A stretch of DNA of 64,000 bases from Geosiphon pyriformis uo1 (taxonomy: Eukaryota; Fungi; Glomeromycota). Below, piece after piece: positions 56,839-62,856 of the stretch. Numbering within the stretch: the stretch's first letter is position 1; each line of letters begins with the position of its first letter. The translations under genes and the position numbers were made by a program. The notes under the pieces are model-generated. The model had not been told where the DNA came from and did not search any database. It saw only the letters and a program-made list of their open reading frames with translations. The DNA is taken from positions 215,008 to 279,007 of the forward strand of contig JAAOMT010000603.1 in NCBI GenBank assembly GCA_016748015.1. Reading direction: 5' to 3'.

Positions 56839-58200
56839 TTTAATACATTTTTTTTTTACCAAAATTAATTAACAAAATTAATTTTATTGGTAATATTTAA
56901 AAAAATCTGAAATATAAACTTTATAAAAAAAAACTTAATATTGTTGTTTTTTATAATTAATTTTATATTTATAAAACCAAATAGAAAATTTTTATTTTTT
57001 ATTGATTAATATAAAGTTAATTATTATTTAATATAATATAATTATATAGAATTTTAAATTAAATATAATATATACACTTTTTATATGTGATCAGACATAA
57101 AATAAAAATTAAATCTTTATAATATTATTATAAAATACTATAATAAAAACCATTTATTCAAAATTTATTAATAATTATTAAATATTTTTTAAAAACAGAA
57201 AAAAAAAAGTTTTAGTTTTTATTTTTTTTAATTCAATTTTTGCAATCAAATAATTTAATAATATAAATAATTAAAATTATGTGTAAAAATATAACTTATT
57301 TTACTTTTTAAAACCAATAATAATTAATTAAAATCTATTATATTAAGTAGTATAATTAAATATTAATTCAAATTAATTTAAATAAATATGTTATTATTAT
57401 TATTATTATTATTTAAAATAAAAAAATTATTGTTTACAATTAAAAAAAAATTAAGTATTATAATTAATATCAATATAACAAAATATCAAAAAAAAATCAA
57501 ATTTTAAATTTTAAATAATATTTAAAAAAATTAATTGTATTTTTTTAGTTGTTTTTTTGCTATTTTGGTTTTTCTTGATTATTTAAATAGCAAAAAAAAA
57601 GTTAATAATAAAAAATAATAACTTACTTATTATTTTTTAATTAAAAATTTTCGAGTTTTTTGTAATAATAACAATTATAGTAAAACTGTTTTTGGCATAT
57701 TATTTTAAAAAACCTTTAAATAAAAAAATTCCATTCAAACCCAAAAATAATGTTATTTTAACAGATAAAAACTGGTTAAGTTTTTATTATTTAAAAAAAA
57801 ACATTTTTTATAAAGTATTATTTAGTTGTTTTTACTATTAAAAAGTTTTTTAAATAATTATATTAATAATAATTAAAATAATAATAAAAATTGTCTTTTT
57901 TTAATTATATTTATAAAATTACAAATAATAATTAAAATAATAATAAAAATTGTCTTTTTTTAATTATATTTATAAAATTACAAATAATAATTAAAATATA
58001 TTGATTGTATTTAAATAAAAAAATTTTTATTCATAAATTGAAATTGGTTATAAATACATAATTAAAATATTAAAATTTTTTTTAAAACCAAAACTGACCA
58101 GTTGTTTTACACATTAAAAAAGAAATAAGTAAAAGTAAAACCACCACCAAATCTGTGTTTTCATGTTATTTTTTGATTAATGAAAATAATTTAGTTTTCT
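56188..58200. repeat. AT-rich desert with a 17-bp tandem repeat x2 (56188-56221), (AAT)n (about 56794-56838) and a 59-bp tandem repeat x2.3 (57865-57998)
   Basis: TATAAGTGTGCATTTAA twice; 59-nt period read directly. Confidence 0.75.
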
Positions 58201-58437
58201 GGTCACACACTTGAATACAGATAATATTGCCACGTGCCATGCAATTATAGGACTTCAATTATAACGAACCCGAAAATGCATTGCACATGTAAAACATAAA
58301 GGGTGTGCACTTATTTAGAATATTTAATATTATGTAGTAAGAGTCCGTTCTATAATGAGAGAAAGGGAGTAAGGATGTACGATCAAACTTTTGTTTTACA
58401 TCCAATAATTTATTTTTCGTCTAGTTATTGGAATATC

Positions 58438-60102
58438 TCAAATTCTCAAAGAGTATTCTGGGAGTATATCGATTACAAACGGGTCCGTTGTAGTGTAAAT
58501 TACTTTGCTTTTATGAAATCCATTAAACTGTGATGCCGCGCAAATGGTGTAGGCGCCCATTTCCTCAAAATATAACCAATCGCCAGGAAACAGCTCAGGA
58601 AGGGTCCCAATCTTGGTAATACAGTCAATGGAATCACAGGTGGGTCCCCAAATACTGCAAGCATATTCGGGTTCCTCCAAATCGAGACCAAATCGGAAAT
58701 TTTCCCCTTTCAACAAAACTTTTGGATAGACAGTTTGATGATCAAACAAGATACAGTTAAATGCACCATAGACTCCATCATTGATGTAATCTGTTTTCAA
58801 AAATATTAAAACGAAAAGACAGTTGAAAAACCAAATACTTCAGTGAATTCTCACAAAAGAGTTTTAACTTACACATATATGAAGGTTTTTCCATGTTCAC
58901 TGTTGGAACTATGTCCATAGATCGAGTTTCGTGAAGGTCACTGTGCACAGTACGGCGTGAGATTATGTGTGTAGCAATTGTAAATGCTGAGGCGACATAA
59001 TAACGACCAGGCTCGGCAATCACTCGGATATGTGGTGGGAAATGTTCATCGATTGCAGGCCCCAATACGGCTGCGATCTTTTCGAAAGTGATTCCATTTC
59101 CGAGACGTTCATGTGTAAATCCACCCCCAACATCTAACAATTCGAAATCAAACCCGAGCTTTGAAGCTTCGTCAAATACCGTCTTAGCCATAAACACAGC
59201 ATCAGCAAAAGCATTCTCATCAAAACATCCACTGCCTACATGAAAGCTGTTTAGGTGAAAGGTTAGTCAATTTTCATTTATAAGAAAACTAAGAAAATAT
59301 TTAGACTGAAATCATCGACATACCTGACCCCAATGACGTTTAAGCCTAAATCTTGAGCAATCCTCAAAAGACGTCCGGTTGAGTCCAATGAAGCTCCAAA
59401 TTTCAATCCCAATTTACATCGTGATTTTGAGTCGTCGGGCAAGATACGAAGGACAAGTTGAGCATGAGAAAAATAGCGTTTAATTTTATGCAACTCTTCG
59501 GCATTATCAAATGTCATTAGCTTGACATTTTTTTCAGCGGCGTAACGAATAAAAGATGCCTGTTTGCATGGATTGGCATAAATGATTTTGGATGGATCTA
59601 CATTAAGATCAAGCACTGTTTGAATTTCTGCTTTACTGGCACAATCAAAGCCAGTGCCCAATTCGGCCAAAAGGCGTAATACAAGTAGATCGGGATTGCA
59701 TTTGACGGCTAGATTAAAAATTTTGCCATACAATAGACTAATAAATTAATTTGGTGCTATGAACAACTTAAAAACTCGAATGGCCTTTATTTTACCATAG
59801 TAAGGTTTGACACGAGGTAAAAGTTTTTTCCAACGTAAATGCTGGCGTCTGATTTCGCCAAGATCAGCAACAAAGAAAGCGTTGTCTCCTTCAGAGTCAC
59901 CAAGATCTTCAACTGCGGTGATGGAATTATTCGGAGGCAATATTTGATTTTTCAAGACTTGGTCAACAGGTAGAGATTGGATAAGGGGAAGAAGTCCATT
60001 CGTACTACCAAGCGAGCTTTTTAATGAATTTTTTTCAACCAAAAGTTTTGAGCGAAATTGCTCTGCTTTATATGTGTGGATGGTTTCAATGGATCCTTTC
60101 AT
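58438..60102 (-). CDS. SPE1: Ornithine decarboxylase, 4 exons
   Basis: YY|AVKCN (PLP lysine), GFDCAS, YANPCK, KFGA, SFHVGSG, LDVGGG, EPGRY, WGPTCDSID and GAYT. Catalytic Lys and Cys are intact. Confidence 0.95.
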
Positions 60103-60209
60103 CGAGGGGTGTTGATGATCAATAATTGCTGTACCTTTTAAGGGATTATTTGGCTGCCGATTGCTTTAGAGGGAATGTTAAAATTGAAGAAATCAAGAGC
60201 AAATGAAAT

Positions 60210-60456
60210 TCAAGGTTGGATAACGAATGAATAAGTGGTGATTCTCGATGTCCACCACACACCCACTCTCTCAGCCGCAAAAAATGAAGCCTAGCTTATA
60301 GAATGTGTCAAGCCAGGGAGGTGAACGCTGAGATGATGAAGTGGTATGGCACTTTAGTCTCAAAAATAGAGCTCGTTACAACAAAGGAAGAATTAATGTA
60401 TTTACCTGATGACCCCGGAAGACAATTAACTTGACTACTTGGTTTTGTGGCGCCGT
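60210..60456 (-). promoter_or_regulatory. Candidate non-AUG (ACG) spliced upstream coding region (uCC) in the ODC leader, 43 aa
   Basis: ATC-ACG-G context. Exon 60456-60406, GT-AG intron 60405-60291, exon 60290-60210. Encodes (M)APQNQVVKLIVFRGHQ|ASFFAAERVGVWWTSRITTYSFVIQP*. Confidence 0.65.
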
Positions 60457-60833
60457 GATGGAAGTGCACCTTTCCGAACGCGGGAAAAGTGCTGTGATAG
60501 AAAAAGGGTGTGTACTCAAGGAGTACAAAAAGGAAACTTAAAGTTTATCAAAGGAAGGAAAAAAACAAAGTAGCAGTAAAAGAACCTTGTGGATTTATTT
60601 TGTATAGGAAACCTTGTGAAACAATCAATAAGCTATGATCTCACAATGATTTATTCACAGATGATCTGATTATTTTTTCAAGGCCCTGCGTAACGTTTCC
60701 TCAAAACGAAAACATTTTGCCGAATAGATCCCCAAAAAAATCGATTCTAAACAAAAAATAAAGCCTGATATTTATCAGAGCAAGATTTTTTCATTTATTA
60801 ACAATAGCCAAGTAAGATTCACCAAAACATAAA

Positions 60834-62856
60834 ATGATAAAAATTGTACCACTTGGAGCTGGACAAGATGTAGGCCGTAGTTGTATTATTGTATCGATCG
60901 GTGATGATAGCACTGGTATCAAGAATATTATGTTTGACTGCGGCATGCACATGGGATATGCCGATGAAAGAAGGTTTCCTGATTTTTCCTATATTTCAAA
61001 GACAGGAAACTTCACTGGCATGCTAGACTGTATCATTATCACACATTTTCATTTGGATCATTGCGGTGAGAATTCGATTGAATATTTTTATCTCATTTCT
61101 GCCAATGAAATCATTTTTAATCAAGATCTTCCTTGATCTTGTTAATCTAAGTATAAGTTTTTCTTTTTCAGGGGCATTACCTTTCTTTACTGAAATGTGT
61201 GGGTATGATGGCCCAATATTTATGACCCACCCTACCAAAGCCATATGTCCGATCCTTCTTGAAGACTATCGCAGGATTACTGTAGAACGAAAAGGGGAAA
61301 CCAATTTTTTTACCTCGCAAATGATTAAGGATTGTATGAAAAAGGTGACAGCTGTGAATCTTCATCAAACGGTCAAAGTGAACGGCGAGGATAATCTTCA
61401 GATTAAAGCTTATTATGCTGGGCACGTGCTGGGAGCCGCAATGTTTTACGTGAAGGTTGGGCAACAATCTGTAGTATATACTGGGGACTATAATATGACA
61501 CCTGATCGTCATCTTGGTGCTGCTTGGATCGATAAAGTACGACCAGATATTTTAATTACCGAATCAACTTATGCTACCACTATTCGGGATTCGAAAAGAT
61601 CACGTGAAAGGGATTTTCTGAAGAAGGTACACGATTGTGTAGCCCAAGGTGGAAAAGTCTTAATTCCAGTTTTTGCTTTGGGACGAGCACAAGAATTATG
61701 TATCTTATTAGAGACATACTGGGAACGAAACAATCTCAGTGTACCAATATACTTTTCGGCTGGGATGACAGAAAAAGCCAATGAATATTATAAATTATTC
61801 ATTAATTGGACCAACGAGAAGATAAAAAGTACCTTTGTTCATCGCAACATGTTTGATTTTAAGCATATCAAACCTTGGGAACGTGCTTATGTTGATGTAC
61901 CTGGTGCCACAGTATTATTCGCCACACCTGGGATGTTACATATTGGAACTTCATTAGAAGTTTTCAAAAAATGGGCTCCTGATGCCAAAAACATGGTAAT
62001 AATGCCGGGATATTGTGTTGCAGGAACTGTTGGAGCCAAAGTTATCAACGGGGAAAAAAAGATTCAATTAGATAAAAATACAACGATCGATGTTCAACTT
62101 CAGGTCCAATACATGTCATTCAGCGCGCATGCCGATGCTCAGGGAATAATGCAACTTATAAAACAGTGTAAACCAAAGAATGTTGTGCTTGTGCATGGCG
62201 AAAAAGCAAAGATGGAATTTTTGGCCAATAAAATTACCAATGAATTTAAAATTCCTTGTTATTATCCAGCAAATGGGACAACAATCACAATTGAAACAAA
62301 TCTGGATATACCGGTTGATATTTCGATTAATTTACTTAAACATCACCTAGTTTGGCAAAAGGACCCTTGCTTAACTCATCTTTCCAAAAAGATAGATCTT
62401 GAACATGTAAAGCCAATGGAATCAATTTCTATACAAGGAATGTTAGTGATGAAACCCAACCAAAATATTCGATTGGTCGATCCCAATCAAGCTACTGATG
62501 TTGTACCCGTTCACGAATTATCATTTGAAGTTACCAAGAAATTAAATTCTTTTATTCAAAATCAACAAAAAAAAAGACAATACAAATTGTTAGATGCTAA
62601 CTTATTTGAGGATTTACGATTCGAAGCTTTTGATGCCGTTTTTACCGCTTTAGAATTGTCACTAGGAAGTACTGTGAGAATTGAAAAGGAAAACTCATTC
62701 CGAATTCGAATAAGATCGATTTCTATTAGTGTTCCTCCTATTCGCAAACCTTTGATTAGTGATGAGAATGATAATGCGCTGAAAATTTCGTGGAATTACA
62801 AGGATGAGGATCTGGCTGAAGAAATCATTTCGATTATTGAACAAACTTTATCATAA
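60834..62856 (+). CDS. INTS11: Integrator complex subunit 11 (CPSF3L; MBL/beta-CASP nuclease), intron 61066-61171
   Basis: [75 protein letters not shown] and SFSAHAD match INTS11 rather than CPSF73/Ysh1 (GAGQEVG, GDYSREEDRHL). Confidence 0.92.

Follow-up and report, generated by a model that had tools for sequence, protein, structure and literature searches.

An intron-split, ACG-initiated putative uCC with a Pro-Pro-Trp motif in the ornithine decarboxylase leader of Geosiphon pyriformis

The ODC locus and its transcript

The window analyzed here is a 64,000-nt stretch of the genome of Geosiphon pyriformis, a member of the Glomeromycotina (Archaeosporales). Its minus strand carries an ornithine decarboxylase (ODC) gene, the coding region of which runs from 60102 down to 58438 in four exons (60102-59796, 59708-59324, 59246-58873, and 58790-58438). 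The exons match Pfam families PF02784 and PF00278 and encode 472 amino acids, the length of the annotated Geosiphon ODC, and the gene is single copy in the 128-Mb assembly. A divergent neighbor on the plus strand occupies 60688 to 62856, as established from a transcript contig and a protein match; its product is 100% identical to the Geosiphon pyriformis Integrator subunit 11 (INTS11) homologue.

Transcript evidence for ODC consists of one assembled contig, taken from one public run that holds the locus as contigs and compared with the genome over 57600 to 62600. The contig spans 58165 to 60619 on the minus strand, minus four GT..AG segments. Three of these are the introns of the coding region (58791-58872, 59247-59323, and 59709-59795), and the fourth, skipped by the same contig, is a 78-nt intron in the leader (60328-60405). 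The run type had been automatically guessed as "RNA? (probably DNA)". As the GT..AG introns of the divergent gene are also spliced out of a second contig, two neighboring genes are represented by intron-less contigs, which, together with the single ODC copy, indicates that the contigs are cDNA. Minor splice variants, such as use of an acceptor at 60291 or retention of the leader intron, could escape evidence at the level of contigs.

The first exon of the ODC leader (60406-60619, minus strand) has its transcript 5' end at about 60619, where the contig ends with a loose adaptor-like tail. The 5' ends of both contigs, at 60619 and 60688, carry the same short G/C-rich tail, which we take to resemble a template-switch adaptor. 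The 5' ends of the ODC transcript (minus strand) and the INTS11-homologue transcript (plus strand) lie 68 bp apart, and this interval, 60619 to 60688, is a compact bidirectional promoter. Within the INTS11-homologue gene, the contig has a G at position 61563 where the genome has an A. As seen in one low-depth contig, the mismatch may reflect strain variation or an error.

The ODC leader is at least 517 nt long (60619-60103), or 439 nt once spliced. The initial annotation of this region had described the leader as free of ATG, and there is indeed none on the minus strand from 60103 to 60714, the nearest being found at 60715. The absence of ATG from the transcribed leader compares with a mean of 4.7 in dinucleotide shuffles, of which 20 in 5,000 reached zero. 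The opposite strand of the leader interval has 13 ATGs. A search of Rfam gave no match up to an E value of 1 within 60000 to 60900.

A split reading frame in the leader

The initial annotation placed in this leader a non-AUG, intron-split upstream conserved coding region (uCC) that ORF finders would not see, and in kind it was right, as its start, frame, and donor are all correct. The putative start codon is the ACG at 60454 to 60456 (minus strand), in a strong context with A at -3 (60459) and G at +4 (60453). From here, part 1 of the uCC (60406-60456) extends for 17 codons, TAPQNQVVKLIVFRGHQ, to the splice donor CAG/GTAAAT, and the transcript contig uses exactly that donor.

Downstream of the donor the structure differs from the one first described, in which a 115-nt intron led to a TAG acceptor at 60291 and a second exon of 26 codons closed with an atypical QP-stop about 107 nt before the ODC ATG. 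The contig joins 60406 to 60327, removing a phase-0 intron of 78 nt with GTAAAT..CAG ends (60328-60405). This is the only leader junction in the contig, and the 60405-60291 junction, for which a check had been proposed, does not occur there. Translation past the joint gives TAPQNQVVKLIVFRGHQ, then RSPPWLDTFYKLGFIFCG, then a stop, for a total of 35 sense codons. Part 2 (60271-60327) comprises 18 codons, RSPPW plus 13 non-conserved ones, followed by a TGA stop at 60273 to 60271. Arg-Ser-Pro-Pro-Trp occupies codons 18 to 22, directly after the intron that follows codon 17. The mature frame bears a canonical Pro-Pro-Trp, the putative stall site, at codons 20 to 22 (60313-60321), or +58 to +66 from the ACG on the spliced leader. 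The 26-codon exon with the QP-stop end is shifted by +1 relative to this continuation and lies partly past the real stop, which translation of the contig-defined exon puts 168 nt before the ODC ATG. That remainder of the leader (60103-60270) is ATG-free and not conserved.

How far the letters of the leader alone can guide such a model was gauged by counting the combinations of a near-cognate, good-context start and a GT..AG intron that yield split ORFs 35 codons long or longer. The leader allows 89 of them, all equally legal. The choice of the 60291 acceptor was therefore unconstrained by sequence, and for the same reason the reality of the corrected element must rest on transcript and comparative evidence. 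The earlier structure, offered as a lineage-specific stall peptide, has in its favor a correct donor and start, the existence of a TAG/G acceptor-like site at 60291, and the compatibility of a rare alternative acceptor with contig-level data. However, with 60406/60327 as the only junction seen, it is refuted as the major form. Its second exon, besides being out of frame, has no similarity in any relative examined, whereas the RSPPW junction is conserved in four other Glomeromycotina lineages. We give the earlier structure next to no credence and proceed with the 35-codon frame.

Conservation of the uCC in Glomeromycotina

Relatives were found with the ODC exon-2 peptide as the query, and their loci were then compared. 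Paraglomus brasilianum and Gigaspora margarita are represented by genomic sequence, as is a Glomeraceae relative known from a genomic contig (L012). The last groups with a metatranscriptome cDNA (L026) that is 85% identical to the Glomus cerebriforme ODC and is already spliced. All four relatives share the ACG with A at -3, the FRGHQ/RSPPW junction, and a hairpin upstream of the start, and in each of them part 1 has 17 to 18 codons ending in FRGHQ. In the three genomic copies, the intron lies at exactly the same position, with lengths of 426 nt in Paraglomus, 504 nt in Gigaspora, and 100 nt in L012. RSPPW is followed in the Glomeromycotina relatives by 3 to 8 codons, with the stop 12 to 30 nt before the ODC ATG. 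Geosiphon is atypical in both respects, with 13 codons after the Trp versus 2 to 8 and a spacer to the ATG of 168 nt versus 12 to 30 nt, and nothing past the Trp can be aligned between it and these relatives. Rather than being a lineage-specific invention, as first thought, the element is common to all Glomeromycotina lineages sampled and orthologous to the ODC uCC of the "Zygomycota" considered below.

Two further candidates for the start, the upstream in-frame TTG codons and the ATC that precedes the ACG, were rejected, as in L026 the frame is closed by a TAG 7 codons ahead of the ACG and the codon preceding the ACG varies across lineages (ATC, ACC, AAA, AAC, or AAG). The ACG is the sole near-cognate codon kept everywhere among the relatives compared.

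Synonymous-biased conservation in Glomeromycotina and Mucoromycota had been suggested as a check, and the outcome is positive. The stretch KLIVFRGHQRSPPW is invariant among Glomeromycotina, bar one Val-to-Ile change in L012. Over 21 codons, Geosiphon and Paraglomus show 12 synonymous and 3 nonsynonymous differences (pS, 0.75; pN, 0.06). In the K-to-W core, which includes both parts of the uCC, 10 of 14 codons differ between these two by synonymous changes only, and the Arg18 codon is CGT, CGA, CGG, or AGG depending on the lineage. The pN/pS ratio is 0.09 to 0.25 in 7 of 10 pairs. This pattern of substitution indicates that the uCC peptide is under purifying selection.

Constraint on the leader is not confined to the peptide. 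Between Geosiphon and L026, 60 of the 66 nt from the ACG to the TGG are identical, including 19 of 22 third positions, whereas their ODC exon 2 has 72% amino acid identity and 43% identity at third codon positions; identity over the 73 nt preceding the ACG is 82%. As third-position identity among Geosiphon, the Glomeraceae, and Gigaspora exceeds what selection on the peptide needs, RNA-level constraint is also present. The same third-position and upstream identities, along with the conserved hairpin, would be expected if the conserved block acted purely as RNA, through the hairpin and a primary-sequence motif, and the open frame were incidental. Against Paraglomus, however, synonymous sites diverge freely while the peptide stays. 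The frame, the ACG, the PPW, and the closing stop are moreover kept in dozens of uCC-bearing leaders whose sequences differ, and the phase-0 intron preserves the frame in four lineages at lengths from 78 to 504 nt. An RNA-only role is thus very unlikely, and we retain a coding element that is also constrained as RNA.

In Paraglomus (L100:1525-1950) and Gigaspora (L101:1425-1928), all ATGs of the leader region lie inside the uCC intron; the 300 nt preceding the ACG are free of them, as is the stretch from RSPPW to the ODC ATG. The Geosiphon uCC intron has no ATG. Given this intronic location, an unspliced or intron-retained mRNA in Paraglomus or Gigaspora would carry several uAUGs. The uCC intron is a possible second control point, at which retention would swap the stall motif for a short unrelated tail and, in these two genera, add the AUGs as well.

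Relationship to known uCCs

In a wider set of 13 further Mucoromycota-type leaders, a PPW core or the closely similar TPW or VPW follows the ACG. Eight of the 13 end in PPWLA-stop or PPWLS-stop, 22 codons from the ACG. In a tree based on exon 2, the clade that includes Rhizopus microsporus has an unspliced 22-codon form ending in RRGFPPWLA-stop, and other Mucoromycota-type leaders show RSPPWLP... or TPW or VPW variants. All uCC-bearing leaders scored have PPW or PPP, except L005 (TPW) and L039 (VPW). All relatives keep the ACG and its A at -3, and the window shares G at +4 with most of them.

According to Ivanov et al. (2008), as relayed in the review PMC2811004, uCCs of ODC homologues occur in Zygomycota and can be as short as 22 codons. 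The same review notes putative ACG starts among uCCs in general (PMC2811004). With its length of 22 codons, the Mucorales-type form found here matches the published "Zygomycota" uCC (PMC2811004). That uCC and the one in Geosiphon have in common their place in an ODC leader, the freedom of this leader from AUG, an ACG in strong context, adjacent prolines, and the position of the hairpin. In contrast to it, the Glomeromycotina form contains a phase-0 intron, and HQRS replaces F, so that 3 more codons stand between the Gly and the prolines. The Geosiphon copy in addition has 13 codons past the Trp, 35 in total, and ends 168 nt before the ATG. With this length, its 78-nt intron, and its post-Trp tail, it falls outside the 22-codon Mucorales definition. 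On the features that the two share, it is an orthologous variant of the Mucorales-type form.

The closest animal counterpart is the mammalian AZIN1 uCC, which starts with AUU, has a C-terminal PPWxxPS-stop, and works through queuing, eIF5A, and polyamine sensing, the PPW being the site of ribosome stalling at high polyamines (PMC9082881, PMC11058473). Like it, the Geosiphon uCC combines a weak non-AUG start, a downstream Pro-Pro-Trp, and a main ORF of the ODC family; inhibition of the main ORF is a property of the AZIN1 uCC and a putative one of the Geosiphon uCC. The two differ in that Geosiphon uses ACG instead of AUU, has about 20 codons from the start to the PPW compared with about 30 or more, lacks the xxPS-stop end, precedes ODC rather than an antizyme inhibitor, and has an intron and an upstream hairpin. 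The ACG start and the PPW without xxPS-stop place it outside the animal AZIN1-type definition.

All of the features by which a uCC is recognized at the sequence level are found in Geosiphon, namely, location in an ODC leader, a near-cognate start, adjacent prolines, and purifying selection. Conservation of the uCC type is concentrated toward the C-terminal side with its two adjacent prolines, and this holds for Geosiphon too. By these characters, the Geosiphon element is an intron-split addition to the known family of ODC uCCs.

A proposed mechanism of polyamine feedback

It is highly probable that the Geosiphon ODC mRNA has an AUG-free leader with an ACG-started, intron-split 35-codon PPW uCC, which would provide polyamine feedback of the kind known from the family. 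From AZIN1 and the ODC family we infer that the uCC would be translated and that its effect would depend on polyamines and eIF5A. The ACG, a start of low efficiency, would mostly be bypassed by leaky scanning, allowing ODC synthesis. At high polyamines, eIF5A would fail at Pro-Pro-Trp and a ribosome that had initiated at the ACG would stall. Scanning ribosomes would then queue behind the stall, the second in the queue being about 60 nt upstream, above the ACG. Such a queue over the ACG would increase uCC initiation and shut off ODC translation, closing a negative feedback on polyamine production.

Features of the leader can be set against this scheme. On the spliced leader, +61 to +63 is occupied by the second of the Pro codons, about two ribosome lengths from the start, and the second queued complex would therefore be positioned over the ACG. 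The tail after the Trp has 2, 3, 4, 8, or 13 codons depending on the lineage, with differing sequences, and this variability fits a stall at the motif, not at termination. The long tail and 168-nt spacer in Geosiphon may allow more reinitiation and therefore weaker repression. Plant and animal AdoMetDC uORFs and the yeast HOL1 uORF, which ends in Pro-Ser-stop, are likewise polyamine responsive, peptide dependent, and located in mRNAs of the polyamine pathway. However, they are AUG initiated and act at termination, whereas in Geosiphon the motif lies within the peptide and is followed by variable sequence.

A candidate ODC antizyme was identified elsewhere in the Geosiphon genome (L102, G000:C689:841809-841994) as a match to PF02100 with 28.4 bits, above the cut-off. 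The match is interrupted by in-frame stops, a pattern that a split or frameshifted antizyme gene would show, and polyamine feedback in Geosiphon probably has its antizyme arm as well.

The uCC could also be translated and repressive but not a polyamine sensor, acting as a constitutive brake or NMD trigger while antizyme alone gives feedback. Such a division would draw on the candidate antizyme locus, the atypical length of the post-Trp tail and the spacer, and the fact that polyamine dependence is extended to Geosiphon from the family. Yet the strictly conserved part of the uCC is the eIF5A-dependent Pro-Pro-Trp about 60 nt from a weak start, which is the arrangement that the queuing mechanism requires, and a plain brake would need neither a conserved peptide nor a non-AUG start. 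We therefore regard a brake that does not sense polyamines as improbable, though less so than the alternatives weighed above, and favor the polyamine-responsive uCC.

A uCC of the putatively polyamine-sensing type extends to the arbuscular-mycorrhizal lineage, Glomeromycotina, in which strong purifying selection has retained the Pro-Pro-Trp motif of animal AZIN1 for several hundred million years. This putative regulatory ORF is invisible to annotation owing to its non-AUG start and its split by an intron, and its recognition should be useful in curating fungal 5' leaders.

A hairpin upstream of the start codon

Upstream of the uCC, at 60466 to 60492 on the minus strand, the leader can fold into a 10-bp stem closed by a loop of 7 nt, and 9 nt separate the 3' foot of this hairpin from the ACG. 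The hairpin has an MFE of -14.5 kcal/mol (z, -4.45), and none of 200 shuffles folds as well. A hairpin of 7 to 13 bp, with the main stem ending 9 to 12 nt before the ACG, was found in 14 of 14 Mucoromycota-type leaders with sufficient upstream sequence (listed with the hairpin are the window, L002, L003, L005, L007, L011, L013, L017, L019, L021, L023, L058, L026, L100, and L101); in Paraglomus the spacer is 15 nt. In a positional scan with 36-nt windows over 216 nt to either side, the mean is -12.6 kcal/mol for the window that ends at -6, compared with a background of -1 to -3 kcal/mol. The minimum there is sharp, and 12 of 12 loci reach -9 kcal/mol or lower at this position.

At least four unrelated stem sequences occupy the hairpin position, those of the Glomeromycotina, L005, L021/L023/L058, and the Mucorales types. 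Within the Mucorales-type stem, a G:C pair is replaced by A:U through a double change in L013, and an A:U pair is changed to G:C, with a bulge, in L007, L017, and L019. Covariation within this clade is not significant, as the structure-fitted alignment has one double-change pair and 69 of 500 shuffles equal it, and MAFFT alignments leave hairpins from different clades out of register. Support for the hairpin accordingly comes from position-specific folding energy and from the unrelated stem sequences. A covariance model built on the Mucorales-type hairpin (R1) recovered its own clade only, plus weak matches that point to Ascomycota-like leaders.

When the scan was widened, 40 distinct ODC leaders of fungi were seen to combine a proline-rich uCC with a start of the form A-N-N-ACG. 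A hairpin precedes the ACG in about 34 of the 40, mostly with spacers of 9 to 13 nt.

Ascomycota-like ODC loci with the hairpin were seen in metagenomes (L028, L032, L037, L042, L045, L048, L064, L073, L087, and L091-L097). These leaders have a near-invariant stem, a spacer of 9 to 17 nt, ACC or ATC followed by ACG G, and a frame of 30 to 45 codons with PPP near its end. One of their clades includes Zarea.

The review PMC2811004 favors independent origins of fungal uCCs. That Ascomycota-like and Mucoromycota leaders appear to have a start module in common, the hairpin plus A(C/T)C ACG G, suggests instead a single origin and, if true, would argue against independent ones.

In human 48S complexes, the mRNA is clamped over positions -9 to -14, where it exits, and positions -17 to -20 contact eIF3 (bioRxiv 10.64898/2026.05.12.723742). 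With -9 to -14 clamped in this way, a refolded hairpin would abut the back of the 40S subunit once the P site is occupied by the ACG. The hairpin could thus refold at the 40S mRNA exit and pin a queued complex on the weak start. Tentatively, and with somewhat more doubt than confidence, we suggest that the 7- to 13-bp hairpin is a conserved and previously unremarked part of fungal ODC uCCs that serves as a back-stop for the queued scanning complex. If functional, it would be a new cis-element for the selection of near-cognate start sites.

Hairpins downstream of weak start codons reportedly enhance their use, as is said to have been described by Kozak in 1990. Queuing induced by a stem-loop has been described on ATF4 (PMC11058473). 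The ODC hairpin resembles the Kozak-type and ATF4 structures in that RNA structure near a weak start would prolong the residence of the ribosome. It differs from them in lying upstream; its 3' foot falls between -10 and -13, at the end of the 40S exit channel and not on the entry side. The review PMC2811004, which this check covered, mentions neither a stem or hairpin nor an intron.

Other local structures were seen around the uCC. A second, weaker folding minimum lies over the codons Arg-Arg-Gly...Trp-Leu-Ala-stop (L002:3497-3568 and equivalents in L007, L011, L017, L021, and L058), where pairing is between the codons for RRG and those for LA. L011 keeps this pairing with synonymous Arg codons, AGG AGA, and a Leu-Ser ending. 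Near the 5' end of the Geosiphon leader, a 7-bp hairpin is found at 60511 to 60527 (minus strand); its sequence is conserved in L026, where the fold is different.
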